From IMG/VR virus record IMGVR_UViG_3300036766_000194, positions 186,001 through 250,000 of that record: DNA of 64,000 nucleotides; one strand, 5' to 3'. The position numbers and the translations under genes are program-made. Under the pieces are notes generated by a model. That model was not told the DNA's origin. It ran no database searches and worked only from the letters and a program-made list of their open reading frames with translations. Each line of letters opens with the position of its first letter. Positions within the stretch are counted from its first letter, which is position 1. Shown here piece after piece: positions 5,799-25,387 of the stretch.

Positions 5799-8700
5799 CT
5801 ATGTGCTGTACATTTGTTCTGCGGCCCAACTCTCAAAACGCATAGCAGGATAACTATCAGGTCCAGGAGTTTCCCCGCGCATGGCCCAACTAAATCTTTT
5901 ACCACTATGATCGGGGTCTAAATCGGGGAATACTTTCTTTGCTTCGGTCAAGTTAGGGAACATTTGATACCCGTGTCCGTTAGGTGTAATTTCTCCATCC
6001 TTAACGCCGACCACTTGAACAGCCATAGTGTCCCGGCTATAGCCCCTTGTTTCAAGGTCATTTAACCAATTTGGAGCAGCCCTTTTCCCTCCAGCAGCAA
6101 GGCTTTGTCTGCCGCTGAAGTTACTTGGGGCGGCGGAGATTAGAAAAGCTGACTTCCAACAAGCCTTCTTGCCGAACGGAACGCCAGCCTTATCGAATAC
6201 GTCTTGAAGATACTCGATTCCAACCTCTTTAGTTCCAAGCCTTGCTGCTGCCTGGGTCTTATCACGCCCTGGCTTTTCTCCAACGATCAACACCTGTGTG
6301 GAGCGGGTGACGCTTCCATGGGCAACAGCACCTAGATTCACCAATTTCTTGGTGATCTCATCGCGCTTTTCCGGAAACACCCCGGTAATACAAAAGGTTA
6401 TACCGGATAGAATTTGTTTAGGAGCTTCACCACTCTGGTCCTCCGAAGCGGGAGCATGTGGACTGAGCTTGCTCTTACGGCCAGCAATGACATCAGACAT
6501 TTGCTTCAAGTCGCCCACCATCTGAGAGCGCGAATACTTTGCATCGTTTAGTTTCGTGACAATCAGAGCCAGATTGTCACCCGTGTATTCCTCGGCCTTA
6601 GCGAAATCGCTCTTTTGGAAATCGTAGAAAAGTTTCCCCTGTGTTTGTCCCACAACACCAATGGCGCGAATAACACTCTCATCATCAGCAATGTTGGGAT
6701 ATGCGATAGCACCCTTACCATACCACAACATGCGATCCCCAACGAGGCTAAGTAGATCGGAGCGTGAGAAGTTATAAATACGCTTAGTCCAAACATCCTT
6801 CATGCCCGGAGTGCCCACAGAAACGTTGGCATCCGCAAGAGGCTCCCAATGATTACGAGGAGGAGCGTTTTCCCACATACCGTCGGAGAGTTGTCCCATT
6901 ATCTCCCCATACCACAACCAAACCTGTGTTTTGTTTTCGAAATGAATTTGTCCATGTCCATAGTACTCGTACCTTTTCGTAGACGAAAATTTGTGGTAAC
7001 GCCGATACTGAGCTTCCCAGTCAGGAAGTTCCATAAGACTATTCATACCTTCAGTATCTGTGAAATAAGAAGGATCTTGTCCAGGATTCTGTAATAACTG
7101 TTCAAACGCAGAGATAAGATCTTCCTTAGAAATAAAAGAATAATATCCTTCTGCCGCAGCCGCAGCTACATATCTAGGTTCTGACTCAAACACGTCCGCA
7201 AATTCTTGTAATGTTTTAGGAGCGATTTTTAATGGGGCTACTCTAATTGTACCCGCGCCTCCATACCCCCCTTCCCAAAAAATGGCGATGAAGTTAGCAG
7301 GCATCTTTTCAAGAATATCCAAAGATTTACTTATAAGATTCGGAGTCCCATACCAAGTTAATTGTGTTAAGTTAGGATAGTCTTGATCACTATCACCCTC
7401 ATCAGCTGTGAGTTTATTTGAACTAGTTAAAGGCTTTCCATGACGATCCCAAGGACCAGGATTATCCGCGTGCTCTCCGGGTGAAGTATCTCTATCAACT
7501 ATTTCATCAAACCCCTTGTTGCAAGAGTGACAATAGTATTTGTTAGGCAGATTATGACTCGGGTCTTCCAAATAAATAGGACTATGACCGCAAAGAGGAC
7601 ATTGTGAGTTTACAAGTTGACCACCGCTAATATCTGCTTCAGACACGGCCATAAAGTTAGAAAAATTTCCCGTATTACCACACCCTTGACAGACGTCTAT
7701 GTAAGATCCGTCTTGAGGAAGAACCTGTATCTGATCACTACCGCAGTTAGTACAATGCTTACCGCGTTTGGCGGATTCTTTATCCTCAGAAGTTATCATC
7801 AATTCGTCTGCGTCTTCAAGAATACCACCGGAATCGTGTACTAATTCCTCAATCTTACCTTTGTAGCTACGAGGGATAGTCAAGGTGTCACCTTCCCATT
7901 CTACATAACGTCCATATCTACCCATAACTGCGTTATAAGCCTTTTCACGCTCAGGTTCTGGTTCTATACGTCCTTCGCCAGCGGAAGTAACTGGACGCCC
8001 GTGACGGCGATTATACTCATCTTTATTTCGTTTTAGAGCTTCTTGTAGCTCAGGATCTTTGGGTGTTTCAGAATCGTCAAGTTGTTTCCCTAGATCAGCG
8101 CGTAGTTTTTCTAACTCTTCTTCATTACCACTTGTCTTATTTCTACTTTCTTCTTGTTGCTGTCTAGAAACAATCCAAAGAACTATTTGAGAAAGTGTTA
8201 TATCAGGCATCGCCGAAAGCTCTTCTTCCGTCCAGATTCCGCCTCCTCCTTCCTTGATAAAACGAATAGCTTCTTCACGAGGAACGTTAAAACCTAATTC
8301 TTTTTGCCACCATCTCACTGCATAATAGGCGATGAAAGGTTGAGATAGATCACTTAGACATTTCTTGGGCAATTGGTCATATTCTCCACCGTGAACACCC
8401 CAATTAGAACCCTCTGCTCCGTGCTTAACAGGAAGAATTTCAGGAGCAACAGTGCGTTGGGGTTGCTGTTGTTGCATTTGCCCTGGCTGAACGGTACGGA
8501 GAGAAGGCATCTTAGATTTATCTTGTAACTCTTGTTTAGCAGGATCTAACACTTGAACGGGACTCCCGCTCGTGTTAGGCTGCTGATTAGCATAGGGGTC
8601 CGTTGCGGACTGCTTTTCTTCTACAGCAGCTAAAGTAAGAGATGATGCTTTAGGTTCAGAAACTACTTCATCCTTACGTTTCTTTCGTAGAACATTCATT

Positions 8701-9893
8701 AGAAGTTGTACGAATTCAAAACTCTTTTCAAGTTCTGGATTTTCGTCAACAAAAGTTTCTACGTTGTTGACTAATTCACGAACATATTGCTTAAAGGCAT
8801 CATGAGAAAGTCCGGTTCTTTTCATCCACTCATCAGCATACATTCTACGGCTACTATGAGAAGATTTGGTATCCTCGCGAGCATCACGCAACATCAAACT
8901 GAACAGTAATTTGTAATTCTTAGCCTGCTGAGGCTTGTACTTCTTATCTATCCAATCATTAAAGAGTTTAGAGAAACGGGATATGTCTTCCCACTGCATA
9001 GTTTCTTCTACTTCTGGTTGTGTTGCGTGCTCGGGAATGTCAAGAATATTTGTGGTGAGATCACCCTCAGGATTTCTCATTCCTCCCCTACTAGGACTCG
9101 ATGTACTAGCAGACTCGTCCGTCTCCTTAAACATAGGAACAGTACCACCATAGGGCTTAACATCTTTGGAATGACATTTAGGACAATTTAAACTTTCTTT
9201 TGAACTTCCAGAAAAGAAAGTTTTTCCACAGTCTTCGCACTTGTATCGACGACCCGAAGGAGTATCTACACTCTGACTCAAACGACGGAGATTATCCACA
9301 GCATCACTATAGCGCCAAGAAAACAGAGTTTTTAGATATTCAGTGACTCTTTTTTCAAGAGGCTTGTCTTTATATTGTTGAAGAGGTTTCCAACTATTCA
9401 TAGCCTCTTCAAACTTACTAAGAGCATTACGGTCCCAAAGTTCCTTGATAATAATTTCCTGAGCAGCTTCTCGTATCAGTTCTTTATCATGAACATTGGT
9501 GTTACTATACAATCGGGATAGGTATGTCGTATTAAACCAACCATCCCAGTTCATCTTGGGATCAATAGGCATGCCCGCTTGTTTTAGTGCTTCATGGACA
9601 ATCACAGAAAACTTTAGACTAGCACAGAAACGAAATCTGGCCGCTATTCTGGCGAATAGAGGTGACAGCGGAACCATCGCTGCAAATTTTTCTGCGGTTA
9701 GATTTATAGGTTGCCCAGCTAAGTTAGTGACGCACAGAACGGTCTTATTGGAACTCGTAACCTTAGCGGTTACGCGGAACACAGGACCAGCTAGGGTATG
9801 AACGATGTCCCCAGTTTCTAACTTGGCGAGCTTTCTAAGATCTACCGCTTGTAGTTCAGCGCCTACTATTTTGTTCAAAATGTTAAAGTTCAT
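5799..9893 (-). CDS. 1364-aa mosaic protein: sigma-like helical region with a Zn-ribbon insert, further Zn ribbons, LigA-type BRCT domain
   Basis: CEDCG...CPKCH, CTNCG...CQGCG and CPLCG...CHSCN ribbons; LSGITFCITGVFPEKRDEITKKLVNLGA...GSVTRSTQVLIVGEKPGRDKTQAAARLG matches BRCT. Confidence 0.8.
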   Translation of the reverse strand: MNFNILNKIVGAELQAVDLRKLAKLETGDIVHTLAGPVFRVTAKVTSSNKTVLCVTNLAGQPINLTAEKFAAMVPLSPLFARIAARFRFCASLKFSVIVHEALKQAGMPIDPKMNWDGWFNTTYLSRLYSNTNVHDKELIREAAQEIIIKELWDRNALSKFEEAMNSWKPLQQYKDKPLEKRVTEYLKTLFSWRYSDAVDNLRRLSQSVDTPSGRRYKCEDCGKTFFSGSSKESLNCPKCHSKDVKPYGGTVPMFKETDESASTSSPSRGGMRNPEGDLTTNILDIPEHATQPEVEETMQWEDISRFSKLFNDWIDKKYKPQQAKNYKLLFSLMLRDAREDTKSSHSSRRMYADEWMKRTGLSHDAFKQYVRELVNNVETFVDENPELEKSFEFVQLLMNVLRKKRKDEVVSEPKASSLTLAAVEEKQSATDPYANQQPNTSGSPVQVLDPAKQELQDKSKMPSLRTVQPGQMQQQQPQRTVAPEILPVKHGAEGSNWGVHGGEYDQLPKKCLSDLSQPFIAYYAVRWWQKELGFNVPREEAIRFIKEGGGGIWTEEELSAMPDITLSQIVLWIVSRQQQEESRNKTSGNEEELEKLRADLGKQLDDSETPKDPELQEALKRNKDEYNRRHGRPVTSAGEGRIEPEPEREKAYNAVMGRYGRYVEWEGDTLTIPRSYKGKIEELVHDSGGILEDADELMITSEDKESAKRGKHCTNCGSDQIQVLPQDGSYIDVCQGCGNTGNFSNFMAVSEADISGGQLVNSQCPLCGHSPIYLEDPSHNLPNKYYCHSCNKGFDEIVDRDTSPGEHADNPGPWDRHGKPLTSSNKLTADEGDSDQDYPNLTQLTWYGTPNLISKSLDILEKMPANFIAIFWEGGYGGAGTIRVAPLKIAPKTLQEFADVFESEPRYVAAAAAEGYYSFISKEDLISAFEQLLQNPGQDPSYFTDTEGMNSLMELPDWEAQYRRYHKFSSTKRYEYYGHGQIHFENKTQVWLWYGEIMGQLSDGMWENAPPRNHWEPLADANVSVGTPGMKDVWTKRIYNFSRSDLLSLVGDRMLWYGKGAIAYPNIADDESVIRAIGVVGQTQGKLFYDFQKSDFAKAEEYTGDNLALIVTKLNDAKYSRSQMVGDLKQMSDVIAGRKSKLSPHAPASEDQSGEAPKQILSGITFCITGVFPEKRDEITKKLVNLGAVAHGSVTRSTQVLIVGEKPGRDKTQAAARLGTKEVGIEYLQDVFDKAGVPFGKKACWKSAFLISAAPSNFSGRQSLAAGGKRAAPNWLNDLETRGYSRDTMAVQVVGVKDGEITPNGHGYQMFPNLTEAKKVFPDLDPDHSGKRFSWAMRGETPGPDSYPAMRFESWAAEQMYST

Positions 9894-10576
9894 GTTTGAG
9901 CCTTCTTATGAGGATTCGGCATTGGGTATTTATCTAGATTACGCAATCTCGATTCACGAAGTTTAGCGCGGGTTTCAAGAGTGTGCGTTTTCCCAAAGAA
10001 ATGATTCTTTTCACCTTTCACTGAATCACGTTGTTTATTACAAGATTCTTGACTACGGGTTAGTCCTATATGAGAATCGCGAAGTTTATGTAAAGTTTCC
10101 TCACTAGCTTTTTTACCAAGACGACCATTATGGATAGCTTTTAGTCCTTCAGGAGTATGGTTAGGATGACTTCCTGTCATCTTTTTTGTGAAATTTTCAC
10201 GGATTTCTGATAGTGTCCACATTTTTCTAGAAGCAGTCGCGATCTTCTCTTTTGTTTTTGAAGTGTGAGGTCCCGTGAAACCTTCTCCGCCACGACAAAT
10301 ATTATAACCGATGTCGGGATGCTGAGATTTCAAACTTTTTATGAGCAACTTCTCGTACTCGCAGATTTCTCGATTAGTTTGACCTTCAAAAAGAGGGAAA
10401 ATGTGAAAATGCTCAGGACCGTATTTGCGGATAGCCTTATAAAGATGGGAACGCAAAGACACGTAGTGTTTTGCGTCGTAAAATTTCTGCTTCAGGTATC
10501 GGGTTAAGCAGGACCCTGTAGTCTTACCGATGTAGATTTTCCAAGTTACATCACAAACAATTAGGTATACAAACAC
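9890..10576 (-). CDS. GIY-YIG homing endonuclease with NUMOD3 repeats
   Basis: VYLIVCDVTWKIYIGKT; GYNICRGGEG; HTSKTKEKI, SEETLHKL, HTLETRAKL. Confidence 0.9.
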   Translation of the reverse strand: MFVYLIVCDVTWKIYIGKTTGSCLTRYLKQKFYDAKHYVSLRSHLYKAIRKYGPEHFHIFPLFEGQTNREICEYEKLLIKSLKSQHPDIGYNICRGGEGFTGPHTSKTKEKIATASRKMWTLSEIRENFTKKMTGSHPNHTPEGLKAIHNGRLGKKASEETLHKLRDSHIGLTRSQESCNKQRDSVKGEKNHFFGKTHTLETRAKLRESRLRNLDKYPMPNPHKKAQT

Positions 10577-10624
10577 GAAATCCCTCCTCTAAGGGAGGGT
10601 CTCATAGTTAGAAAACGTAAGTCG

Positions 10625-10843
10625 TTAATCTAAATTTACGTCGTTAGGATCCCAGCTCGTCTTTTCTCCTTCTTTTAATACAGACGAAAGGATGTCAGTG
10701 TATTCACTGTGGTCTTCAATAGCCTGGGGAGCTTTAGGTGCCCCATTCTGATCAGCCACAGACACTGCTATTTTCATACGCTTATGCTCACCTGTAAGCA
10801 GAGAGTTCATAGCGGTTGCGTCAACTTTTGCTATTTTTGCCAT
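10625..10843 (-). CDS. Small hypothetical head-module protein
   Basis: ORF with AGGAG SD. Confidence 0.7.
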   Translation of the reverse strand: MAKIAKVDATAMNSLLTGEHKRMKIAVSVADQNGAPKAPQAIEDHSEYTDILSSVLKEGEKTSWDPNDVNLD

Positions 10844-10917
10844 TCTAGTGCTCCTATGGGACTACGGGATGCCCCTCATTCTGGGGTCAAAAAGTCTAAA
10901 ATTTCGTAAGTTATGGA

Positions 10918-11247
10918 TTATGTTGGATAATAAATAGCTGTTAAGGCAAATCCTCCCAAAGTATTCGGGGGAGAACTAGAGTCTGTGAAGGGAGGATTCG
11001 GCATGTGGTGGATAACTTGGACTATGCCTTGTAAGTTGAAAGTCTTGTCGGCGAACAGCAAATAGCGATTGTTTACTGAGTCAAAAATGTAACTTGTTAT
11101 ATTTAACCCTTCTCCGTCTACATATACTTTTACATCTTTCGTAGGATCAAAAGAACCTGTAACGGCAGAAGAAAAGGGACCAGTTAAAGGAACACACTGA
11201 ATGACTATACGATTAGGATATGTCCCGGTTGTGGCTGCGTTAAGCAT
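10918..11247 (-). CDS. Hypothetical structural protein
   Basis: ORF track; beta-rich; overlaps the upstream stop. Confidence 0.7.
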   Translation of the reverse strand: MLNAATTGTYPNRIVIQCVPLTGPFSSAVTGSFDPTKDVKVYVDGEGLNITSYIFDSVNNRYLLFADKTFNLQGIVQVIHHMPNPPFTDSSSPPNTLGGFALTAIYYPT

Positions 11248-12607: not shown

Positions 12608-12639
12608 TCCCTAGTCCTTCACTAAGGGAATGAAAGTTC

Positions 12640-13062
12640 TTAAAGCAATTTGTCAAACACCCCGGCATTCATCAGTCTGTGTAATTCAGCCATAAATTTA
12701 CGTCCATGATCATCGAATTCAGGGTACGAACTTACATGACACATCTCATGAATTAGGGTAAGTTCCGTTTGATTAGGAGTGAGGTTATGTTTGGGATTAA
12801 TCTCAATGATAAATACCCCATTTTCATAAGAAGTAAATCCTGTATATTCGTCACTACCACCATAGCGAATTATCACTTTATTAGGCAATTTGGAAGAGAA
12901 GTATTTTTTGTTGTTATTCTTATACATTTCTTGTAATTCTATAATAGAAGGAGAATCAGAAGAACAAGCTGAAGGGGGTATCCTGCTGACAATATCAGTG
13001 TTTCCAATGCTAAGGACCATTAGAATTACTGTCGTAATTATAAATAATAAAATCTTTAACAT
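12640..13062 (-). CDS. SprT-like zinc metalloprotease with an N-terminal hydrophobic segment
   Basis: TLIHEMCHV...DDHGRKF. Confidence 0.8.
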   Translation of the reverse strand: MLKILLFIITTVILMVLSIGNTDIVSRIPPSACSSDSPSIIELQEMYKNNNKKYFSSKLPNKVIIRYGGSDEYTGFTSYENGVFIIEINPKHNLTPNQTELTLIHEMCHVSSYPEFDDHGRKFMAELHRLMNAGVFDKLL

Positions 13063-13070
13063 TTGTACCC

Positions 13071-13397
13071 CTATGTGTACCCTAGCGGATGAGGATTTCC
13101 TTCACCATAAAATGTGACAATTGTCTTGGTTAAATCACGTCCTAAATTTATACCATTGATAAGCATTTTACGCATAACAAGAGCCTTAACATAACGACGA
13201 TATTCGCTTATTGTCATGTCGCCTTTGTCATTGTTACAACTCCAACAAGCGGGGAGTAGATTATAATCCAAATTCCTACCTCCACGCGAGCGAGGTTTGG
13301 CGTGATCAATTGTATCGGCATAGTGTCCGCAGTACCAACAACGACCACGGCACTTATACATAGTGCGCATCCACTTAATTTTAGGCACGCGAGACAC
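13071..13397 (-). CDS. HNH endonuclease
   Basis: CWYCG...TIDHAKPRSRGG...NLLPACWSCNNDKG. Confidence 0.9.
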   Translation of the reverse strand: MSRVPKIKWMRTMYKCRGRCWYCGHYADTIDHAKPRSRGGRNLDYNLLPACWSCNNDKGDMTISEYRRYVKALVMRKMLINGINLGRDLTKTIVTFYGEGNPHPLGYT

Positions 13398-13408
13398 AAA
13401 AACCTTTC

Positions 13409-13946: not shown

Positions 13947-14924
13947 TTAGCGGTCAGAAGTACCTACTCCAGAACCCGTACCAGTTGTTGCGCCACGGGT
14001 GATGAGCACGCGTTGAACTCCGCTCGGGTTGAATACGAGGAAGCCCAGGTTCTCGAAGATCGAGAAACCGATCTGACGAAGGTCAGGACGATCTGCCGAC
14101 ATAACCGTTAGAGGGATACGCTCAGGGATAACGCCAAGGAACTCTGCGTCTGCCAGAACATAAAATGTGCCGTAGCCAATTTTACGAGACTGGAGAAGCG
14201 TTGCGCCCCAGAGATAACCCATAACACCCGTCTTGAGCAGCTTGCGCTGAGTTTCACGGTCGATGTTAGCATCTGTCCACTTGAGCAAGTCAGCATAGTC
14301 GCGGGGGTTGAAGAAGACATAAGCGATAGACAGGTCGTGACGAGTAACCTGAGCAAAGCTATCTGCCATCTGGCTCACCGAGACTGGTGCTGTGATTGTC
14401 TGGTCGATGTTGTAGACGTAGTCGTTTACGTTGGAGCCAGCTGCAGCGTTAGCTGCTACTGCCACACCATCAAACAACTGGAATACATAAGCATCTTCCT
14501 GTGCGCCAACTTCTGCCTTAGCAAGGTTGAGCGCACGGGCGACCAAGTCAAAACGGCGTTCTTTGATCTGCGTGATCGGAATCATCGGGTTAGAGACGAT
14601 TTCGAACGTAGGAACGGTTACGCGCTTTGGCTTTGTGACGGAAACGATGTCTCCACCCTCTTCACCAACTACGAATGCCTCAACGAACGAGCCACCCTGT
14701 AAATCGGTGTTGACGGATCCACTGACATCAAATTCCTTGTCGTAGATCGGGAGTGCGCCATCAGGAAGCGTCTCGACCATGAGTGCCTTACGTGCGATAC
14801 TCATATAGTCGCGACGACGGCGGAGTGAAGGACCCAACGATGCGGCCAACTTCTGACGTCCACCTGCGGTCTTGAGCAACTGCCCAAGCATTGCGGTTTG
14901 CTGCTGTGTTCTAGAAAGATTCAT
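13947..14924 (-). CDS. Major capsid protein
   Basis: RRRRDYMSIARKALMVETLPDGALPIYDKE and VTVPTFEIVSNPMI motifs of a large-phage MCP family; follows protease, scaffold and decoration genes; terminator downstream. Confidence 0.85.
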   Translation of the reverse strand: MNLSRTQQQTAMLGQLLKTAGGRQKLAASLGPSLRRRRDYMSIARKALMVETLPDGALPIYDKEFDVSGSVNTDLQGGSFVEAFVVGEEGGDIVSVTKPKRVTVPTFEIVSNPMIPITQIKERRFDLVARALNLAKAEVGAQEDAYVFQLFDGVAVAANAAAGSNVNDYVYNIDQTITAPVSVSQMADSFAQVTRHDLSIAYVFFNPRDYADLLKWTDANIDRETQRKLLKTGVMGYLWGATLLQSRKIGYGTFYVLADAEFLGVIPERIPLTVMSADRPDLRQIGFSIFENLGFLVFNPSGVQRVLITRGATTGTGSGVGTSDR

Positions 14925-14948: not shown

Positions 14949-15458
14949 TTAGAGCAAGCTCGCAACGCCAAGCCAAGGCTCGGTTGCGGTTGGAATGTGT
15001 GTGCATACGCCGACAGCAGGGTTTCCTGAGAGAGTACCCTTACGAGCACTCGAGGTATACTTGCCGATATTAGTGCTAGTGGTTCCGCCGCAATAAACAT
15101 ATGCTCCTACAACGAAAGTTGCAGAGGCATCGTAGGCTTCGGAATCAACGATTCCTTGCCAAAATGCGCGAACAACAGGGGCTTTCTTCGAACCCGCAGG
15201 TCCGATTGCGCCAGCGAACTCACCCGGACCGTTGAGCAGTGTTGCATAGGGCACTTGTGCCGCTGCCGTATCTGCATCGCACGGAACCGCGACTACGCCG
15301 CGCCCTGCAGTTGCAGAAGTTTTAAGGGCAACGATAATTCCACCCTTGTAACCTGCAGCCGAAAGAACAGCCTGGTCAGTTCCTGGATCGCCAGTCAGTG
15401 TAACATCCGGAACAGTAGTTCCGTCGTTCTGACCATAATAGATCAGTTTAAGTGACAT
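14949..15458 (-). CDS. Capsid decoration/stabilising protein
   Basis: Directly upstream of the MCP; start moved to MSLKLIYYG at 15458. Confidence 0.7.
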   Translation of the reverse strand: MSLKLIYYGQNDGTTVPDVTLTGDPGTDQAVLSAAGYKGGIIVALKTSATAGRGVVAVPCDADTAAAQVPYATLLNGPGEFAGAIGPAGSKKAPVVRAFWQGIVDSEAYDASATFVVGAYVYCGGTTSTNIGKYTSSARKGTLSGNPAVGVCTHIPTATEPWLGVASLL

Positions 15459-15610
15459 ATTTTTGGTTCTCCAATGTAGCTTTTGAATTTTGTATTTATC
15501 CCAGTCTAGCGGGTTGGAGACCCGGTAAGACTTTAGGATGAATACAATGACTACATTCATTATGAAAAAGTTAGTAAAGAAAGCATTAAACTAGCGAACT
15601 CCTAAACATT

Positions 15611-16216
15611 ATGTCCTTAGTGTATCTAATACATTGCACGCTTTCTAAAAAACCTTATATTGGGCAAACTATTCAATCTCTAAAAGATAGGTGGAAAGGG
15701 CACTGCTCCGATGCCCGAGCAGGGTCAAAAACTCATTTAGCTAATGCTATTCGCAAGTATGGAGCAAATGCATTTGAATTGTCCGTAGTATGTGAGGGTG
15801 AATTCACACAGCAAGAATTAGATAATCTAGAAAAACTCTGGATCATAGTGTTAAATGCACATGAAACGGTGGGAGGATATAATCAAACTTGGGGAGGAAC
15901 TAGTAATGCAGGATATTGGCATAGGGGCAAAAAGCGTTCTCCAAAAACCTGTGAAAAAATCAGAAAAGCTAAATTAGGAAACAAAAATCCGATGTTTGGG
16001 AAAAAGAATCCAAAAGGCTCTTTTTCAGCAACTAATAATCCTATGAAAGGAAAACGTAAATCTAAGGCATGGAAACAAAAAGTAAGCAAAATCATGTCAC
16101 ATCCAAGAACTCTTGAACATTACCAGGCTGTTCTATTAGGTAGAAGATCAAAAGGTCAGCACATCAAAAAAGAAGTTTGTAAAAAATATCAAATTTCTTA
16201 TCTAGACAAATACTAA
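15611..16216 (+). CDS. GIY-YIG homing endonuclease with NUMOD3, antisense to the head operon
   Basis: LVYLIHCTLSKKPYIGQT...RWKGH; GYNQTWGG; SPKTCEKI; NPMFGK. Confidence 0.9.
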   Translation: MSLVYLIHCTLSKKPYIGQTIQSLKDRWKGHCSDARAGSKTHLANAIRKYGANAFELSVVCEGEFTQQELDNLEKLWIIVLNAHETVGGYNQTWGGTSNAGYWHRGKKRSPKTCEKIRKAKLGNKNPMFGKKNPKGSFSATNNPMKGKRKSKAWKQKVSKIMSHPRTLEHYQAVLLGRRSKGQHIKKEVCKKYQISYLDKY

Positions 16217-16259: not shown

Positions 16260-16523
16260 ATGCCAACCGGATGCAAATGTGGTGAAAATAAAACTGCTGA
16301 TGTTGGAACTCTTTGGTATGTAGAAGGAAGAAACGCTTATTCAGCCGACGCTTCAGATCTTCAACACTCTGGAGAACGAGGAAAGAAATGCCCTGGATGT
16401 AACGGACCCATGCCACCAGTACGGCTGAACTTTCTTCCAAGATCTCAAGGGGGAGAAAACATAACCCACTGGATAGGTCGATGTCTTAACTGTAAAGCCA
16501 ATATAACTATTTGGAATGACTAA
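16260..16523 (+). CDS. Zn-ribbon protein; copy of the C-terminal domain of 55090..56055
   Basis: Identical to the C-terminus of 55090..56055 from GCKCGENKTA onward; own SD (GGAGG) and promoter-like CAGTAGAGTATAAT. Confidence 0.75.
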   Translation: MPTGCKCGENKTADVGTLWYVEGRNAYSADASDLQHSGERGKKCPGCNGPMPPVRLNFLPRSQGGENITHWIGRCLNCKANITIWND

Positions 16524-16525
16524 AA
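16269..16525 (+). repeat. 257-bp inverted repeat, copy A (partner 55088..55344)
   Basis: Compared base by base with the reverse complement of 55088..55344; no mismatch found. Confidence 0.95.
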
Positions 16526-17366: not shown

Positions 17367-17370
17367 AACG

Positions 17371-17438: not shown

Positions 17439-18845
17439 TTACTCGTCGCCAAAGAGCAAGTCAGCAAGAGATCCCTCAGTAGGTGCCCCGGCTGTAACCT
17501 TTAACTTCTTGATGGTTTCCTTCTTAGCAGCTGCCTTAGGAGTTTCCATGACAGGCTGTTGGTCTTCCTTAATGCGCTTCTGTCCGCTGTCTTCGGGCTT
17601 CTGATCTTCAATCAATTCTGCCCAAATGTCACCAGTGTGGTCGGATTCGCTATCGCGATCATCACCCTTGAGTTCAGATTCAAAGTGATTTGCTGCCTCA
17701 CCAGTAAAGGAGGGAACTACATCCACCCCGTCCACTGAAGTAGCTTCCTTGTAAGAGGCGAATAAGGTTGCCATCGAATCGTCACCTTCTACAGAAGCAA
17801 ACATCCCGGACATTTCATTGGAATTGTTGTCCATTGATGCTGCCATCTCACCTTCTTCAGAAGGCCCGAAGAAATCTTCTCCGCCTCCCATTTCATCCAT
17901 ACCCTCTTCCATCTCTTCGCCTTCATTTGCCAAGGAATCAACCTTGTCTTCAGGCTGAGAGAAAATAGAGTTGAGATCCAGTTCTTCCTGACCCTCTTCT
18001 AGAATAGTCTCTTCAATGTTTTGAATAGCCTGTTGTGCTTCTGCAATCTGCTCAGAAACCTGTTCTTTCTTTTCTTCTGTTAACATTGTTGCAGCTTCCT
18101 CTTCAGGAGCAGGTGCTGCCTCTTCTGTAGGTACCTCTTCAGCTGCTGGTGCTTCCTCAACTGGGGCTTCTTCAGCCTCCGGAGCGGCCTCAACAGGCGC
18201 AGCGTCTCCTTCATCAGCCTTCTTAGAAACTACATGTTCCTTGCAACCTACCTTACCGCATTCTGCACACTTGGAATCTGCCTTTTTTGCAGCGGCAGAA
18301 ACAGACTTCTGTTCTTTCTCACTGCCCTCACTCTTATCAACGGAGTCAGCGGGACGAGATTCCGACTTGCTTGCGTCCATTTCCTTTGGTTCAGAACCCT
18401 TGCGACCATCTTCGTACTTGTCAGGCTGAGGTCCTGCATCCTTACGATCGTCTGCAACCTTGCCAGCATTCTTGGCGTCACCCTTAACTTCTGTGGTTAC
18501 GGCACTCTTTTCCTTATTCAATTCGGATTCGGGAGACATAAGGTCATTAAGATCCTTCTTGTGTACCGACTCATACGTCTCAGCAAATTTGGACCAGTGA
18601 GCATTGATAGCGGTCTGACGTAGAGCCGCCTTCAATACTTTAGTGGACGCGCTCAATAGCGCAGACGCCAGGTGCTGTTGCACCTCAGCGGGAGCTTTAG
18701 GTAGCATGGTCTTGGCGATGGTCCAAGCACAGACTGTGCGTACACGAGCCTCTTTGCTTGCTGCCGTTACCACTTCTTGTGCCTGCTTTGCAGCGGCAAT
18801 ACGCTCTTTTATGGGGGACTTTTCGTTAAGATTCGCCATGTTCAC
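17439..18845 (-). CDS. Prohead scaffold/core protein
   Basis: Very acidic and low-complexity; lies between the protease and decoration/MCP genes. Confidence 0.7.
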   Translation of the reverse strand: MNMANLNEKSPIKERIAAAKQAQEVVTAASKEARVRTVCAWTIAKTMLPKAPAEVQQHLASALLSASTKVLKAALRQTAINAHWSKFAETYESVHKKDLNDLMSPESELNKEKSAVTTEVKGDAKNAGKVADDRKDAGPQPDKYEDGRKGSEPKEMDASKSESRPADSVDKSEGSEKEQKSVSAAAKKADSKCAECGKVGCKEHVVSKKADEGDAAPVEAAPEAEEAPVEEAPAAEEVPTEEAAPAPEEEAATMLTEEKKEQVSEQIAEAQQAIQNIEETILEEGQEELDLNSIFSQPEDKVDSLANEGEEMEEGMDEMGGGEDFFGPSEEGEMAASMDNNSNEMSGMFASVEGDDSMATLFASYKEATSVDGVDVVPSFTGEAANHFESELKGDDRDSESDHTGDIWAELIEDQKPEDSGQKRIKEDQQPVMETPKAAAKKETIKKLKVTAGAPTEGSLADLLFGDE

Positions 18846-18947
18846 TTTCCTTTAAGAAAGATTGGGGATATACAAACCCCTTCTTCTTTGTGTTCTAAAG
18901 TTAATTTATTATCAAAAAGCGGTTATCCGCTTTTTGAATCCCTGCTA

Positions 18948-19817
18948 TTACTTCAATTTAGAAGCTATTTCACTCATTTCCAGCATTAAATCTTCATGTT
19001 CACTAACACTAGCTGCTTTTGCGAACTTGGATTCCTTATCAGATTCAGCAGAAGCCGTAGTATAAGGAGTCTTAGGACCAATCCACTCTTCCATGACTGT
19101 ATTACGTTTAACCGCCCCTGGAAAAGCGGGAGTAGCAACCCAAGAAGCCTCAACGAATTTGACTCCACCATTTTTCATTGTCTTATGGCCACAAAGTTCT
19201 GCCACACGACGGGGAACGCCATTTTCATCGTTTAAAAAAGAACCTTTTTGAAAAGCCAAGTGATTACAGTAATTTCCATTATCGGTAACTCTTGCCCCGC
19301 AAAAAGAACAAATTACCAAGTCTGTAACACAACCCATGCTCAGATACTTGACTTTGCCTGAACGGATGTCGTCAATCAACTGTGTGTGTGCAAGGTCAGT
19401 GGCTACCAAGATGTCAACTAAATAAACCCACACTCCAGAAGCAATATTTATCTTACGAAGAATCGCATCCAAAATATGCCCCTTAGCGAATTTTGAGTTT
19501 TGAAAGTGTTCAACGAAGTTAAATGCTCCTACAAATGACTTATGAGACAACTTTAAGACTTCATTAGTCCAGGCATCGTCATTGTTGTTGACAAGATGGC
19601 TGCATTCTGGCTTGATAAAATAGTCATTAGGATCATCCTCTACCATGACAGAACTCATGATTGTGCAGTGTGATAAAAGATAGATACTTTTATCTGCTTT
19701 GGCTGCTATTTTTAAAAACGATGAGGAATTTGAGAAATTAGAATACAATGTATTCCAGTCTCTAATGTTGATAACTGGGTCGGCTACTAAGGCACGTGCT
19801 GTTTTGATAAAAGGCAT
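18948..19817 (-). CDS. Prohead (capsid maturation) protease with Zn ribbon
   Basis: NNNDDAW, FVEHFQ..KGHILDA, LSMGC (candidate catalytic Ser), CSFCG...CNHL, FVEASWVATPAFPGA; canonical gene position. Confidence 0.75.
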   Translation of the reverse strand: MPFIKTARALVADPVINIRDWNTLYSNFSNSSSFLKIAAKADKSIYLLSHCTIMSSVMVEDDPNDYFIKPECSHLVNNNDDAWTNEVLKLSHKSFVGAFNFVEHFQNSKFAKGHILDAILRKINIASGVWVYLVDILVATDLAHTQLIDDIRSGKVKYLSMGCVTDLVICSFCGARVTDNGNYCNHLAFQKGSFLNDENGVPRRVAELCGHKTMKNGGVKFVEASWVATPAFPGAVKRNTVMEEWIGPKTPYTTASAESDKESKFAKAASVSEHEDLMLEMSEIASKLK

Positions 19818-19877
19818 AGCTATAATGTGTGTTGTAATTAAATAATTACAGTATCAAGTAGTATAGGAGCACTACTT

Positions 19878-20807
19878 ATGCGTAAAACTGATATAAGAGA
19901 TATAAGATTCGATTGTTGGGTGGCTCTACGAGAAACTAGGAATGGATATTGGCTATGTAGGTGCGATTGTGGATTTGAAAAAGAGGTTCTAAAGAACAAT
20001 CTAGTACAAGGTCGTAGTCGTAGCTGTGGCTGTAACGCCCCCTACAAAGATCTAACAGGAAAGGTTTTTACACGATTAACAGTGATAGAAAAAGCTCCTT
20101 CACAGGTAACAAATAAAGAACGACACACTATGTGGAAAGTGCGTTGTCAGTGTGGTACAGAAAAGATAGTTTCTGGAAAAAACCTACAGTCTCATCACAC
20201 CAAAAGTTGTGGATGTTTAGGAAAAAGTGCCGTTTGGTTGCACTTAGATATAAGTGGAAAACGTTTTGGTAGGTTGAAAGTATTGGAAAAAGTAGGGGTA
20301 GAAAATGATAGAACTATTTGGAGAACTTTATGTGATTGTGGTGCTGAAAAGACTATTGCTGGTTCAGATCTCACATATGGAAATACAAAAAGTTGTGGTT
20401 GCTTAAAATACACCAGTAGAATGTTGTCTTTCGGTAGAGCGGCAAGAAATAATATGTATGAACACTATCGTTTAAACTGTGCAAAAAAACGAAATCTACC
20501 TTGGGACCTAACTAACGAACAATTTGACAAGTTAACACAGGAGAATTGCTACTATTGTGGAATGTCTCCTTCTAATCGTTGTAGGGGTTCAAAACTGGGA
20601 GGAGATTTTGTCTACAACGGTTTGGATAGAAAAAACAATGATCTAGGGTACGTTATAGAAAATGTAGTAACTTGCTGTAAACACTGTAACCGAGCTAAAT
20701 CTAGTCTTTCTTTTTTAGAATTTATAGCCTATATAAAAAGACTATGCACTCATTTCCAGAATTTTAGGGCAAAGGATCATGAAATGTTTTTAAGTATTCA
20801 TCCTTAG
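19878..20807 (+). CDS. HNH-type homing endonuclease with four CxCG/KSCGC repeat domains
   Basis: Repeats G..F.RL.V....W...C.CG......NL....TKSCGC; C-terminal CYYCG...NGLDRKNNDLGY..ENVVTCCKHCNRAK. Confidence 0.85.
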   Translation: MRKTDIRDIRFDCWVALRETRNGYWLCRCDCGFEKEVLKNNLVQGRSRSCGCNAPYKDLTGKVFTRLTVIEKAPSQVTNKERHTMWKVRCQCGTEKIVSGKNLQSHHTKSCGCLGKSAVWLHLDISGKRFGRLKVLEKVGVENDRTIWRTLCDCGAEKTIAGSDLTYGNTKSCGCLKYTSRMLSFGRAARNNMYEHYRLNCAKKRNLPWDLTNEQFDKLTQENCYYCGMSPSNRCRGSKLGGDFVYNGLDRKNNDLGYVIENVVTCCKHCNRAKSSLSFLEFIAYIKRLCTHFQNFRAKDHEMFLSIHP

Positions 20808-21918
20808 ACTCTGACCAAAGTGCTTCCATATCAACACCTTCCATTCGGGCCATTTCCTTCATACGAGGATCAGACATGAAACGTAATTTGACATCTTCTT
20901 CCTGCTCTGATATGAAATCCAACCAATTATCAGTAGCAACCTTTTCCATGGCTTGCTTAGATCTTAACCAGTGATTTATAAGATTTTGTTCACGACTGTC
21001 TAATTCTACCCAGGGACGGAAGAACAGCATTGAAGTTGGTTTGCCCGTTACTCCTAGCAATTTGCAACGACCTTTTGGAGTTAAAGCATTCCATGCCTGT
21101 TCTATGTTCTCACTAGAAATCTTTTTACTGGTTCCCCCACTGATTGTATCCTGTTTAATTTCTTCTTTAACATCTTCATCGAGATGACGACGCATATCGT
21201 TACGTGGCGGGAGTTTGGTAGGAGTCTCGTGGAATTCAACTTCTGAATCCCGAGGCTTAGAAGACGGAGTCGTGTTGAACTTATGTGCTACAGGAGGCTT
21301 ACCACGCTCACGACGTTTACGATTAAACAGCCAGGGTTCATCCTTAAAGCGACTGGGCATCTTATCAAAATGTCTCAATTGTCGAGTAACATTGGGAGCA
21401 AAGGTTTGAACATTTCGCGCAGCCGTCTTGCCCTTTAATCCTTGTAAGAATCCGTCTAATTCGAACAGTTCTCCCTGTTGAACGGGGATACGTTTCTCAA
21501 ATAATGTAAACCCCCAGTTGGTAACTTCTAACCTAAGACCAGGAAGATTTTTATTATTATAATGACTATACCCATCACATCGGTGGTATCTTCCACGGTG
21601 GTCTGAAGCGGTGGGAATCTTATACCAACCCATTTCTTCTATAGAATCTTGACTAGACCCATATCTTACATTTTCAGGTTCTGTACCTTTTTGAGCGTAA
21701 GGGAATCTGTCAGTAGATTCAGATGATGCGCGAGGATCCTGCGCTGCTTCAGGTCTGTTCAATTCTATACTGGTCTGATCTAGGGCTTGCTTTTTCTTCT
21801 TTTCATCTTCTTCACAAATACACTTAGCGGTAGGTTTTAGGCAAAAAGCGCAAGTATTATGCTTCCAAGATGTGCTTGTTTTATGTGTGGGAGCTACCGT
21901 TTGTTTTTTACTAACCAT
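20764..21918 (-). CDS. Mosaic hypothetical virion-associated protein
   Basis: ORF track; modules separated by KQA/KTAA/ISS/KVA motifs. Confidence 0.75.
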   Translation of the reverse strand: MVSKKQTVAPTHKTSTSWKHNTCAFCLKPTAKCICEEDEKKKKQALDQTSIELNRPEAAQDPRASSESTDRFPYAQKGTEPENVRYGSSQDSIEEMGWYKIPTASDHRGRYHRCDGYSHYNNKNLPGLRLEVTNWGFTLFEKRIPVQQGELFELDGFLQGLKGKTAARNVQTFAPNVTRQLRHFDKMPSRFKDEPWLFNRKRRERGKPPVAHKFNTTPSSKPRDSEVEFHETPTKLPPRNDMRRHLDEDVKEEIKQDTISGGTSKKISSENIEQAWNALTPKGRCKLLGVTGKPTSMLFFRPWVELDSREQNLINHWLRSKQAMEKVATDNWLDFISEQEEDVKLRFMSDPRMKEMARMEGVDMEALWSESKDEYLKTFHDPLP

Positions 21919-22000
21919 ATCACCCTCAAGAAATAAAGACGCAGCATGAGGTAGCTCCGCTGCGCCTTTTAACTAGCTAACTACTGTAGCATCACCCTTG

Positions 22001-22687
22001 TTATTTCCGCTGTTGGAAAAGAAGCGAGCGACCTGTAGCATCACCCTTGTTATTTCCGCTATCAATAAAGTCTCCGTAAACGCTGCCAGAGATATCAAAA
22101 ATGTCTGTAACGGTAATGCTGCAATCTTCTGCTACAGCTGCGGTTTCTACCTGATAGCCAGAGTTGTAAGAGTTCATCCAGCATCCTTCGTATACCGTAA
22201 CCACCGCATACAGCCCAGAATTACCCAGGTTGTTCAGCCCGCCTTCATTCGGTACATCTGCCTTAGAAGCCTTACCATGATTGCGTGTTTCTGAAGCAAG
22301 TTCAGAAAAAACTATTTCTGTCTTGATGTCAAAGGGCCATTTGTGATGCTTCAAAGATCTTACCAATCCACTAACTCCTGCTTTATAACCAAACATCTGC
22401 TGTAGGTTAGCAAGATAAAGAGCGGTACGAGTAACGCTAATGGTTGTTGGCTGCGTTACACCAGGGACTAGTTCCGCGATCTGATCACCATAACCAAGTC
22501 CACGAATAGTTTCAATATTCTTAGTCTCTGACACGCTGAAGGACGAAGTCACTCCTAGCTTTACAAACTTACCTACATCCACTGCGGGAGTGAAAATCTT
22601 AAACCGGGTACTAATGACCGATTCGGTCTGACCCGTTGTTCCTTGGCGGTAAAGATATCCGCCGATTGCGTTTGATCCGCTTGCCAT
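22001..22687 (-). CDS. Tail tube protein
   Basis: IRGLGYGDQIAELVPG motif; downstream of the sheath gene. Confidence 0.8.
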   Translation of the reverse strand: MASGSNAIGGYLYRQGTTGQTESVISTRFKIFTPAVDVGKFVKLGVTSSFSVSETKNIETIRGLGYGDQIAELVPGVTQPTTISVTRTALYLANLQQMFGYKAGVSGLVRSLKHHKWPFDIKTEIVFSELASETRNHGKASKADVPNEGGLNNLGNSGLYAVVTVYEGCWMNSYNSGYQVETAAVAEDCSITVTDIFDISGSVYGDFIDSGNNKGDATGRSLLFQQRK

Positions 22688-22741
22688 GTTGTTTCTCCTT
22701 GTTGCTACTAATTAGCAACGAAGTTGTTTTCTACTATTCCG

Positions 22742-25387
22742 TTATTCAGCTTCTGCTATGTTCAAACCGAAGAACTTAACAGATGCTTCCTTAGATGATT
22801 CTTTCTTTGCTGCCTTGGTAGCTTCTTCCTCAGCTTCTTCAGCCATGAGCATCTTGTTAAATGCTTTTTTAGCATCTTCAAAAAGAAGCATTGCGCTGTA
22901 GACGGCTTCAACTGAGTTACGGATAGCTGCCACATCATTCACTTTAGTTAAGGGTTTAAGTGATAGATACATCTTCTTGAGATCTTCCTCAGCATCTTCA
23001 CAAGCCTTCAACGCTTTGGTAACGGTCATCTCAGCTGCTAATTTCTCGGGCAGGACTGTTGCTGGACGCTTAATCCCTGTATTATCGTCACGCATTTTGT
23101 GCGCTTCGGCAACTTCAGGAACACGCTTACCTCCGTCACAAATTTCGGAGGTCTCGTCATTAGAAGTCCAAGCTCCCCCTATCGCAGCGGAAGCGAATTT
23201 CTTTACGAATAAAGATGCGTTCTTTTCAAGAAGATAAGCCGCACGATGAGGAGTATAACCTTCACCCTTCATATGCCATGCTAACGCCCAGGGATTATCA
23301 ATCTCTGGGTGCTTTTTCATCTTCTTAACAGTACCTTCCCATCCTTCAGGAGCAACCGCATTCTTATTAACAGAAGCTGCTTTTTCTTCCTGTGAAGCTG
23401 CATATTCCTTCTCACAAGCTCCACACATATCAGAACCCGCCATAGCCTTGTTACCACATTCACATTTTACAGGCTGACCATGACTCTTTGCTGACTTTTG
23501 TTCAACTGGACGATTCTTTAGAACCGAAGAAAGCTGTTCAATCCAAAGTACCGCAGACTTATCATCCATAAATTCGGGAACGCCCGCTAGAGCCTTAATG
23601 GCTGCTCCTATAGCCTTAGTTCCTAGGGATTGAGGATCCAGTCCACCTGTTCCAGACATATCTTCTGTAGGTAAACCTGATTCGGACACATCTTCAACAG
23701 GGAGGTCGTCTTCTACTGGGATATCGTCTTCAAGGATATCCTCAGGTGGTTCAACCATGTCTATTTCTTTATCTGCACGCTTTCTCACAAAAGCACCTCT
23801 CTTATTTAATCTCTTCTGACCTTCTTCAGAACGAAAGAAATCTTGAAGCGTTTCGGGACCATGACCTTCACTTACTATATCATTCGCTCCGCCACCACCA
23901 TAGGCTTCCCAACTACCATCTTCTTTTACTACCACAGCTTCTAAACCAGGGGTTTCATCGCCGTGTACGGGTCCCCAATAAACAGTTCCCATTTCCCTAC
24001 CTATTGGAGCATTGGTGTCTGCTTCAAAATCCAACGAGTTAAGAATCTGTTCATAATTGAGTGACATAGCTCTCTTTTTCTTAGCTATAACTGGAACGGC
24101 GATAGGAACGGTAGATTTAGGAGCAGATGAATTCTTGATAGGTTCTGATGCTGGAGAAGGAGATTCTGTTTCTGCTTTCTTTTTACGTTTTGGCATACAC
24201 TTCTTACAATATTCTTCATTACCAGAATGAAGTTTACCGCATAGCTCACACTTTGTACGATCATCATCCGAGGAGGACCCTACAATAGATTCACCCATTG
24301 GTCCTAAGTATCCTGCAATAGAGTCGGCTAAGTCAATTTCTCCCTTAGTACGAGCAAGTCTTTCTATACTCTTTAGGGCATTAGGATTTTGTTCTGCGTA
24401 ACTTTCTCCGTGGAGAATATCCTTAAGTTGTTCTTCAATAGCCCAACCATATCTAGAACTACAAATATCAATAAAATCTTGCATGTCATATCTAGTGAGA
24501 GAACCAGTAAACATGTCTTCTGCTTCAATCTCAGGTTCTTCATCTGCTACGGATGAGGTAACAACCCCACCAACTTCTCCCGGATCCACAGCTTCAACTG
24601 GGGCACTGAATGCAGAACTTGGACGAGGAATAGACGTAGGAGGAGTCTTTCCCACTAAAGGACTAGATTCAACAGTAAAACGGGCTTCAAACCAAGAATC
24701 TTTAGGCCAAGCATTCCAATGATTGCTAGCAGCTACAACAAATGCCCTCAATCCTACGTTATTCAAAGCCTTTACAACTTTATCGGCAAACTTACGTTCG
24801 TCCATACCGTGAGTATAGAAATACCCATGTTTTGCTATTAAAACTCTCTGTTGTGGGCTGTAACTTACATCAGCAATACCAGACAAAGCATCTCTTGCCT
24901 GTAGCTTTATCTTGGTGTTCATATCGGTTGCGGTTTTAACAGAAGCTAAAGCAGACCCTGGGCCTGTAATGGGCTTGGGTGCTGAATCTAATTTGAATTG
25001 GTCTACCTCTCTTGGGTCAAATTCATCAGTTTCTTCGAATCCATGTTTCATAAACCAACTAAAATCTATAGGTTGGCGACGCAACATCCCGTTAGCAAAG
25101 TCTACGTCAACTTCTTTACTTCCTAGACTATTACGAACCAAAACACCCTGAATACCACTTATAGATATTCCAGATTTATCAACAATAACAGTAACCTCAT
25201 CTAAGATCTTTTTAGGTTCTTCAAAATCATTAATCTCAGGCCAATTAGTAACCTTCATGTCAGCTATCAGAGGCTTAGACCCGTCTTCAAAAGGTTCTAC
25301 TCCCGTCACCCCATACCAGTCTGTCTTATCAAAAGGACGAAGTGCTTTGGAAGAAACCTTATTCCGTTCGTTGAAAAGTTTACTCAT
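22742..25387 (-). CDS. 881-aa mosaic virion-associated protein
   Basis: ORF track; short domains in low-complexity linkers; APEGWEGTVKKMKKHPEIDNPWALAW module. Confidence 0.8.
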   Translation of the reverse strand: MSKLFNERNKVSSKALRPFDKTDWYGVTGVEPFEDGSKPLIADMKVTNWPEINDFEEPKKILDEVTVIVDKSGISISGIQGVLVRNSLGSKEVDVDFANGMLRRQPIDFSWFMKHGFEETDEFDPREVDQFKLDSAPKPITGPGSALASVKTATDMNTKIKLQARDALSGIADVSYSPQQRVLIAKHGYFYTHGMDERKFADKVVKALNNVGLRAFVVAASNHWNAWPKDSWFEARFTVESSPLVGKTPPTSIPRPSSAFSAPVEAVDPGEVGGVVTSSVADEEPEIEAEDMFTGSLTRYDMQDFIDICSSRYGWAIEEQLKDILHGESYAEQNPNALKSIERLARTKGEIDLADSIAGYLGPMGESIVGSSSDDDRTKCELCGKLHSGNEEYCKKCMPKRKKKAETESPSPASEPIKNSSAPKSTVPIAVPVIAKKKRAMSLNYEQILNSLDFEADTNAPIGREMGTVYWGPVHGDETPGLEAVVVKEDGSWEAYGGGGANDIVSEGHGPETLQDFFRSEEGQKRLNKRGAFVRKRADKEIDMVEPPEDILEDDIPVEDDLPVEDVSESGLPTEDMSGTGGLDPQSLGTKAIGAAIKALAGVPEFMDDKSAVLWIEQLSSVLKNRPVEQKSAKSHGQPVKCECGNKAMAGSDMCGACEKEYAASQEEKAASVNKNAVAPEGWEGTVKKMKKHPEIDNPWALAWHMKGEGYTPHRAAYLLEKNASLFVKKFASAAIGGAWTSNDETSEICDGGKRVPEVAEAHKMRDDNTGIKRPATVLPEKLAAEMTVTKALKACEDAEEDLKKMYLSLKPLTKVNDVAAIRNSVEAVYSAMLLFEDAKKAFNKMLMAEEAEEEATKAAKKESSKEASVKFFGLNIAEAE

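Follow-up and report, generated by a model that had tools for sequence, protein, structure and literature searches.

Which peptide bonds does the head-maturation protease of a jumbo myophage cut, and in which of its proteins? The question is raised by a 64,000-nucleotide stretch of IMG/VR virus record IMGVR_UViG_3300036766_000194 (hereafter the window), which corresponds to bases 186001-250000 of a 299,875-bp jumbo myophage genome and encodes a prohead protease at 18948..19817. The initial annotation of this DNA had noted that a short motif, a basic residue followed by any residue and then by Ala or Ser ([KR]-x-[AS]), lies at module boundaries of many head-region proteins. It had proposed that the protease cuts there and that leaders ending in the motif carry cargo into the head for injection. 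The prohead protease of T4, gp21, cuts at (L/I)-x-E. Our analysis makes it likely that the window protease prefers Lys-x-Ala and cuts behind it, the next residue being Ser, Ala, Gly or Asp. Basic-x-Ala marks the probable cleavage sites of this enzyme, and the specificity differs from that of T4, as indicated by motif enrichment, conserved alignment columns, the sites flanking the protease domain, the predicted fold and a cut in phage G. No result supports either the targeting of proteins into the head by leaders or the injection of the products.

According to protein searches, the closest isolate is Tunturiibacter phage Tunturi 5 (major capsid protein (MCP) 70% identical, protease 60%), followed by an uncultured 485-kb phage, Bacillus phage G and the cluster C mycobacteriophages; the identity of the MCP to phage G gp27 is 34%. 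Comparing the nucleotide sequence of the head module with GenBank phages gave no match. The long structural module lies on the minus strand and is broken up by homing endonucleases. It runs from the tail sheath (25886-29941) through a 150-aa protein, an 881-aa protein, a 228-aa protein and a 384-aa protein to the protease, an acidic scaffold-like protein, a decoration-like protein and the MCP. This order is identical in Tunturi 5, phage G and the four metagenomic loci inspected in full among the 80 IMG/VR loci retrieved with the protease. The block of protease, scaffold, decoration protein and MCP is kept in the window, Tunturi 5, phage G and the examined metagenomic loci. Pfam searches matched no family to the protease (at E 0.01), the scaffold, the MCP or the 881-, 384- and 228-aa proteins. 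All genes and motifs of the head module described below are on the minus strand unless the other strand is given.

The protease (18948..19817, 289 aa) matches the PHROG family phrog_18299, 'head maturation protease', with an E-value of 3.5e-18. An AlphaFold2 model built on an alignment of 91 diverse homologs (identities within 33-71%) has a predicted local distance difference test (pLDDT) score of 83.6, with the core above 90; a model based on 19 close homologs reached 51 and was unusable. The model comprises a core of approximately residues 41-250, low-confidence residues 1-40 and 251-275, and a C-terminal helix (276-288). When this model was compared with known structures using VIA-align, the 33 best entries, with Z from 10.7 to 7.2, all belonged to herpesvirus proteases or T4 gp21; MlaD, the first unrelated fold, reached Z 6.6. 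The matches include the proteases of varicella-zoster virus, pseudorabies virus, herpes simplex virus, Kaposi's sarcoma-associated herpesvirus, Epstein-Barr virus and human cytomegalovirus, as well as T4 gp21 (5jbl, Z 10.0). H50, H104, S160 and S225 are invariant in the 91 homologs; the H104-S160 spacing of 56 presumably resembles that of T4. On the strength of the model, the product is predicted to be a prohead serine protease of the assemblin fold, in the superfamily of the herpesvirus (S21), T4 gp21, phiKZ gp175 and HK97 gp4 enzymes.

Every peptide quoted by the initial annotation is present in the gene it was assigned to. The enrichment of the broad motif, however, was not confirmed: genome-wide, [KR]-x-[AS] occurs at 0.0153 per residue versus 0.0158 expected, and in the set of head proteins it was found 117 times versus 98 expected (1.19 times). 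About 20 copies are expected by chance in the 881-aa protein, so that a few picks at its boundaries prove nothing. The expectation that the motif would exceed composition fails for [KR]-x-[AS], which is at chance level, and holds for the strict form, K-x-A. In the single genome, K-x-A was found 13 times versus 6.3 expected in the scaffold (p 0.01), 5 versus 2.1 in the protease and 15 versus 8.1 in the 881-aa protein, and other spacings of Lys and Ala (K-A, K-xx-A, K-xxx-A) show no excess in these three proteins. As the per-protein p values are only 0.01-0.06, the motif was tested on relatives.

For this purpose, all 400 residue pairs at the i/i+2 spacing were scanned with no prior choice. K-x-A ranks first of the 400 in 26 non-redundant scaffold orthologs (446 versus 245 expected, Z 12.8), and each of the 26 scaffolds contains more copies than its own expectation. 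It ranks second in the proteases (143 versus 49.5) and in the small family of the 384-aa protein (50 versus 29.5), and the family of the 881-aa protein has a modest excess (100 versus 72.5, Z 3.2). Shuffling within 10-residue segments, which keeps the local Lys and Ala richness, gave 282 +/- 14 copies in the scaffolds versus 459 observed; with segments of 10-40 residues, the values were 266-282 +/- 14. In the scaffold family, R-x-A exceeds expectation slightly, K-x-S does not deviate from it and R-x-S falls below it. Negative controls without an excess of K-x-A were the MCP (whole protein, five non-redundant orthologs) and a 455-aa protein; the 228-aa protein has 1 copy versus 7.6 expected over 14 orthologs, and the decoration protein, with 24 versus 17.2 over 27 orthologs, was also counted as having no excess. 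Glu-based motifs of the T4 and phiKZ types were considered as well and rejected, not being enriched in the head set: [LIVM]-x-E occurs at 1.21 times expectation there and 1.12 times elsewhere, [AGS]-x-E at 0.99 and 0.97 times.

In the protease itself, the motif flanks the folded domain. K5-T6-A7 (19797..19805), the IKTA↓RA site quoted by the initial annotation and a candidate autoprocessing site, lies in the low-confidence N-terminal segment. Across the 91 homologs, position 5 is Lys in 70 and Arg in 19, position 7 is Ala in 75, Gly in 8 and Ser in 6, and position 9 is Ala in 83; the quoted motif is thus conserved (a basic residue in 89 of 91). These residues belong to a block, M-A-F-x-[K/R]-x-A-x-A, set among variable columns. 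K36-I37-A38 (19704..19712), the last K-x-A ahead of the folded core, falls in a conserved F-x-K-x-A-A column of the clade alignment. On the other side, between the catalytic domain and the C-terminal tail, the stretch K264-F-A-K267-A-A269-S270 (19008..19028) resembles a release site. Residues 267-270 of this junction are Lys in 74 and Arg in 11 homologs, Ala in 63 and Val in 15, Ala in 86, and Ser in 53, respectively, and the neighbouring columns are variable; the motif is also found in phage G (KIAS) and LR745208 (KQAS). Both flanking motifs are in segments with a pLDDT below 60.

More distant relatives carry the same signal. A profile search with the protease against 1.8 billion representatives yielded 1404 clusters at 50% identity, most of them proteins of 450-550 aa consisting of the protease domain and a scaffold-like C-terminal extension of 200-300 aa, which starts at the junction motif in most homologs. 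In the extensions of 129 representatives of such clusters, K-x-A was found 442 times versus 245 expected and R-x-A 319 times versus 185; Ser after the motif Ala is enriched 3.4-fold, and other spacings are not enriched. K-x-A is enriched in 105 of these 129 distant extensions, and a further [KR]-x-A often precedes the conserved C-terminal domain of the fused homologs. In phage G, K-x-A is the top pair of gp19 (8 versus 2.4) and occurs 7 times versus 2.8 in gp21; it is also the top pair of the protease-scaffold fusion gp94 of mycobacteriophage Catera (18 versus 8.2). The definition given by the initial annotation can accordingly be narrowed: basic-x-Ala stands, corrected to K-x-A with Arg tolerated at P3 in distant relatives and Ser favoured at P1' (P1 and P1' being the residues before and after the cut).

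The scaffold-like protein (17439..18845, 468 aa, pI 4.5) lies between the protease and the MCP, is syntenic in all relatives and contains 13 K-x-A. Several of these are conserved in 24 aligned orthologs: K86-F-A88 (18582..18590) in 19, the neighbours K125-N-A127 and K129-V-A131 (18453..18473) in 22 and 24, K208-K-A210 (18216..18224) in 20, in a region that otherwise aligns poorly, and K366-E-A368 (17742..17750) in 16. In these columns, Lys and Ala are kept and the residue between them changes; at 125-127 and 129-131, P2 can be V, S, K, T, Q or R. Among the four scaffold sites put forward by the initial annotation, KVA↓DD (24/24), KKA↓DE (20/24) and KEA↓TS (16/24) are conserved, whereas KKA↓DS is not conserved or not assessable. 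Computed cuts at all 13 motifs give fragments of 4-71 residues and one of 158 residues with a pI of 4.05. Protease and scaffold are separate open reading frames (ORFs) about 100 bp apart in the window and are fused in most homologs. The window scaffold does not have the coiled-coil-like N-terminal domain (about 200 aa) of most relatives, whose scaffolds are 720-790 aa long; this extra domain opens in a leader-like manner (...K-K-Q-A↓D-L-D).

A cut in a homolog has been established for the MCP. The capsid protein of phage G has 282 residues and 31.2 kDa before maturation and 255 residues and 28.2 kDa after it, as determined with N-terminal sequencing (Hua et al. 2017, PMC5646251). Removing 27 residues from phage G gp27 gives computed masses of 31.19 and 28.17 kDa, matching the published ones, so the cut falls after Ala27 in G-R-V-A-L-A↓Q. 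In the alignment, A25-L26-A27↓Q28 of gp27 corresponds to K25-L26-A27↓A28 of the window MCP (13947..14924, 325 aa; phrog_2522 major head protein, E 6e-44). K25-L26-A27 (14844..14852) is the predicted maturation site, which would leave a mature protein of residues 28-325 (298 aa), and every clade member as well as LR745208 has KLA there. The initial annotation had pointed to LLKTA↓GG seven residues upstream, K18-T19-A20 (14865..14873). That motif is indeed conserved, as K-[TS]-A throughout the clade and in LR745208, with E-T-E at this place in phage G, but the experimental counterpart is KLA↓AS at 25-27 instead; K18-T19-A20 may be a second cut inside the propeptide. The 2025 multi-omics paper on phage G and the Tunturi paper contain no cleavage data.

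Taken in order, the proposed course of maturation would be as follows. The protease would trim its own N-terminal 40 residues at K-x-A and also cut itself at K-A-A↓S, the junction that precedes the C-terminal helix. It would chop the acidic scaffold at about a dozen K-x-A into small peptides and a very acidic 158-residue fragment, and remove about 27 residues from the MCP at K25-L26-A27. In the 881- and 384-aa proteins, whose genes lie between those of the tail tube and the protease, the motif, standing in a short hydrophobic-basic leader, probably marks propeptides and module junctions. That this protease makes the cuts, which bond exactly is severed and that the two variable proteins are processed are points that we infer.

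Several observations weigh against this course of events. Cleavage has been observed in neither the window phage nor any close relative. The single-genome statistics are modest, and the case rests on comparative data; the orthologs compared are not independent samples, so the Z values overstate significance. The phage G MCP site has Ala and not Lys at P3 and is thus better evidence for Ala at P1 than for Lys at P3. As for the enzyme, Foldseek alone gives weak matches (E-values 0.07-0.3), and its sequence matched neither a protease family of Pfam nor a protein in the PDB, where profile searches returned only spurious zinc-finger or low-complexity matches. Finally, M-A-F-L-K-x-A-x-A at the N-terminus of the protease is conserved in its entirety and might serve for binding instead of being cut.

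This last point belongs to a broader explanation, in which K-x-A is a conserved interaction or structural motif (scaffold-capsid or scaffold-DNA), or a by-product of Lys and Ala richness, and is not cut at all. The scaffolds are in fact rich in Ala and Lys near the motifs, with Ala enriched 1.3-1.8-fold at P7-P4, and A-x-K is mildly enriched in them (288 versus 245). Nevertheless, the enrichment is limited to the i/i+2 spacing and to the order from Lys to Ala, and it outlives local shuffling; the motifs lie in the low-confidence segments flanking the protease domain, where assemblin-type enzymes self-cleave, and the aligned site of the phage G MCP is a proven cut. We regard this explanation as improbable. 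It could also be argued that any long protein has many [KR]-x-[AS] and that the quoted sites are chance occurrences selected afterwards. The composition-level frequency of the broad motif genome-wide, the 20 copies expected in the 881-aa protein alone and the several quoted sites that are unconserved or not assessable speak for this. It is contradicted for strict K-x-A, which ranks first or second of 400 pairs in independent families and is enriched in most of the distant extensions, and it stands only for the broad motif; as an account of the whole, it is very improbable. Cleavage after the Ala of K-x-A is, in our opinion, the better explanation.

The reading of the two variable proteins near the protease is less certain. 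The 384-aa protein (20764..21918), a candidate processed head protein, occupies a hypervariable slot upstream of the protease, where relatives have proteins of 178-2567 aa that share little with one another. Its conserved blocks are common to metagenomic loci L007, L077 and L075 and to Tunturi gp330. A leader, (M..SP)LL-x-K-[KQR]-[AG] followed by [LM]-D, forms the N-terminus of approximately 16 non-redundant slot proteins, and several slot proteins share a zinc-ribbon-like C-terminal end. The same peptide is found internally in L075, L077 and the window 384-aa protein, at junctions of blocks that are separate in other phages. In the window protein, it corresponds to K43-Q44-A45 followed by L-D (21784..21792), so that the KQA↓LD boundary of the initial annotation proved to be homologous to the conserved leader. 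Over 39 non-redundant slot ORFs, homing-endonuclease inserts included, K-x-A was found 292 times versus 179 expected. A genome-wide regular expression for the leader gave 3 matches versus 3.6 expected, and therefore no genome-wide class of leaders is claimed. From their sequences, the slot proteins with a leader ending in K-x-A/G are candidates for processed head proteins.

The 881-aa protein (22742..25387), an ortholog of Tunturi 5 gp328, is a candidate internal or ejected head protein. Its relatives are 454-832 aa long and have only the N-terminal peptide and the C-terminal half in common. The window protein has a specific insert of about 450 aa, and three of the sites named by the initial annotation lie inside it. 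These three are not conserved or not assessable; the fourth, KNA↓VA at K675-N-A677 (23357..23365), has K-x-A in 19 of the 21 orthologs with a residue there. ESM Atlas offered no usable neighbour for the conserved half. Between these two candidate genes lies a virion protein of 228 aa (22001..22687), 65-79% identical in relatives, which is not a predicted substrate. The strongest K-x-A excess in the genome, 20 versus 9.7, belongs to a 1276-aa protein encoded just left of the window (genome 180776-184606; 6777-10607 of locus L085), and its full-length ortholog in L086 has 20 versus 11.7. A locus search with this protein found two relatives only, too few for a family test. Its gene, which has no assigned function, lies between those of a 633-aa protein and a 542-aa protein running into the window start, and the large terminase is at L085:1427-4423. 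The motif pattern of the 881-, 384- and 1276-aa proteins fits processed head-internal proteins.

Could these leaders then be capsid-targeting sequences (CTS) like those of T4, and the 881-aa, 384-aa and similar proteins polyproteins that are packaged, cut and injected as effectors? The recurrence of the leader at the start of slot proteins and at internal module junctions, the K-x-A excess in the slot ORFs and in the 881- and 1276-aa proteins, and an N-terminal peptide of the 881-aa family, M-x-S-x-L-x-A-R-R-K-K-A↓T, all agree with this model. Tunturi 5 gp328 is labelled 'DNA ejection protein', a label that comes from automatic annotation, and T4 and SPN3US provide precedents (PMC10052503). 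On the other hand, there is no evidence for virion presence or injection of the candidate proteins, and PHROG, Pfam and ESM Atlas searches recognised no enzymatic or effector-like domain in them. The window copy of the 881-aa N-terminal peptide has K-V-S instead of K-x-A, and the 384-aa motif lies at residues 43-45, away from the extreme N-terminus. The leader is at chance level genome-wide, and targeting could equally be a function of C-terminal tails, as in herpesvirus scaffolds. We consider the packaging and injection of such effectors doubtful, though possible.

The small-ORF leaders quoted in support of this model have another origin. A 97-bp direct repeat with 100% identity (49862-49958 and 50491-50587) covers the start and the upstream DNA of two minus-strand genes in a non-structural region, which share their first 17 residues, including MAKAWFLHKGA. 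This peptide is found on both genes because the 97-bp stretch, with the DNA upstream of the start codon, was duplicated; instead of leaders, these are a recent DNA duplication. A similar start, A-D-A-R-D-R-D-E-D, is found in a third small ORF (53575-53811), which suggests a paralogous family of N-terminal domains. A 257-bp inverted repeat, also 100% identical, joins 16269-16525 (+) with 55088-55344 (-); through it, ORFs 16260-16523 and 55090-56055, which are otherwise unrelated, share one and the same Cys-rich module at their C-termini (...ITIWND). This looks like a recent module exchange. The NKTA↓DV boundary proposed for 55090-56055 does not coincide with it, as the motif is several residues inside the repeat, the edge of which is upstream of the motif.

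Compared with known systems, the closest parallel is the herpesvirus assemblin (pUL26, MEROPS S21), which has the same predicted fold (Z up to 10.7) without detectable sequence similarity. Herpesvirus proteases cut at YLQA↓T/S and VQA↓S (PMC4498786), that is, with Ala at P1 and a preference for Ser at P1' in a P3-x-P1 frame, as is predicted from the [K/R]-x-A-S consensus of the window clade. The SPN3US enzyme of the phiKZ type uses A-x-E in the same frame, also with Ser at P1' (PMC10052503), and the P3-x-P1 frame can therefore be regarded as the norm of the family. The K-A-A-S junction matches the herpesvirus release site in position, and the extra [KR]-x-A of the fused homologs is like the maturational site. 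The differences are that P3 is Val, Leu or Ile in herpesviruses and Lys or Arg here, and that the window domain contains an inserted Cys cluster (C170, C173, C184). In addition, protease and scaffold are fused in herpesviruses and encoded by separate genes in the window, while most homologs (450-550 aa; Catera gp94, 1369 aa) are fused as well.

T4 gp21 has the same fold, and self-processing, scaffold breakdown and removal of an N-terminal MCP propeptide are predicted here too; the expected scaffold fragments resemble T4 core degradation. Like the T4 CTS, short N-terminal leaders ending at the protease motif are present on variable proteins near the protease gene, but leader-type motifs here are also internal, and Glu motifs are not enriched. 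With phiKZ gp175 and SPN3US gp245, the window system would share one protease acting on many substrates and large proteins with propeptides of several motifs, while their motif is A-x-E and the MCP here is of the small phage G/Bxz1 type (325 aa) rather than of the T4 gp23 type. Phage G (gp19, gp27) and Catera (gp94, gp96) have homologs of the protease, the MCP and the decoration protein, arranged as in the window, at 27-35% identity. Phage G differs in having A-L-A and E-T-E in the MCP in place of K-L-A and K-T-A, and Catera in the fusion of its protease with a scaffold of about 1100 aa.

Some further features of the window can be noted. The decoration-like head protein (14949..15560), syntenic with phage G gp26 'capsid decoration', is not a predicted substrate; all its orthologs align from residue 35 (Met, nt 15458), so the ORF has probably been called too long, with Met35 as the true start. 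Four homing-endonuclease genes, three of the GIY-YIG type and one of the HNH type, lie within the structural module (4720-5253 (-), 9890-10576 (-), 15611-16216 (+) and 19878-20807 (+)); two run against its direction. The last of these, an HNH endonuclease on the plus strand between the protease and 384-aa genes (phrog_374, E 4e-44), is an insertion, as Tunturi 5 has no gene at the matching position between gp330 and gp331, and it is outside the processing system. HNH-type ORFs also occur in the slot before the protease in several relatives. Every related locus that was examined encodes, two genes downstream from the MCP, a counterpart of the small HNH protein at 13071-13397 (-), with 48-60% identity; given this constancy, the protein seems to be a permanent constituent of the module and not a mobile endonuclease. 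A BRCT domain spans residues 1160-1232 of a 1364-aa protein (5799-9893 (-)), which also gave a zinc-ribbon match; with 8 K-x-A versus 7.0 expected, this protein has no excess of the motif, and the retrieved loci contained no homolog of it. Downstream of the tail genes are a nicotinamide phosphoribosyltransferase homolog (38914-40308 (-), E 6e-131) and a DNA helicase gene (41208-43169 (-)). Five clustered tRNA genes (one for Cys, three for Thr and one for Gln) were also detected, together with a predicted transfer-messenger RNA gene and a tRNA with a TCA anticodon that ARAGORN classifies as tRNA-SeC (45973-46900, 48274-48654 and 53973-54046).

Protease-driven head maturation, the processing of many substrates in jumbo phages and leader-tagged internal proteins are already established. 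What seems to be new is the combination of Lys at P3 with Ala at P1, its spread over a very large clade, most of whose members are uncultured, and an arrangement of the sites like that in herpesviruses; this novelty shrinks to an extension if structural or proteomic work on phage G already reports the gp19 motif. A wider picture can be drawn, in which a clade of at least 1404 clusters, including phage G, the cluster C mycobacteriophages and soil jumbo phages of Acidobacteriota, combines Lys at P3, Ala at P1 and a herpes-like site layout with hypervariable proteins next to the protease that are K-x-A polyproteins packaged by leaders, cut in the head and delivered to the host. We consider this picture as a whole unlikely. 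The prohead proteases of the T4 and phiKZ types cut after Glu, whereas the herpesvirus enzymes that share their fold cut after Ala. If the specificity proposed here is true, phages that cut after Ala and carry the motif where protease and scaffold meet would link the capsid maturation of phages and herpesviruses more closely in function than T4 gp21 does. The K-x-A code would make it possible to predict mature N-termini and scaffold removal and to spot candidate internal or ejected proteins in hundreds of uncultured huge phages, most of whose head-module genes are without annotation, and it can be tested in two cultivable members of the clade, Tunturi 5 and phage G.

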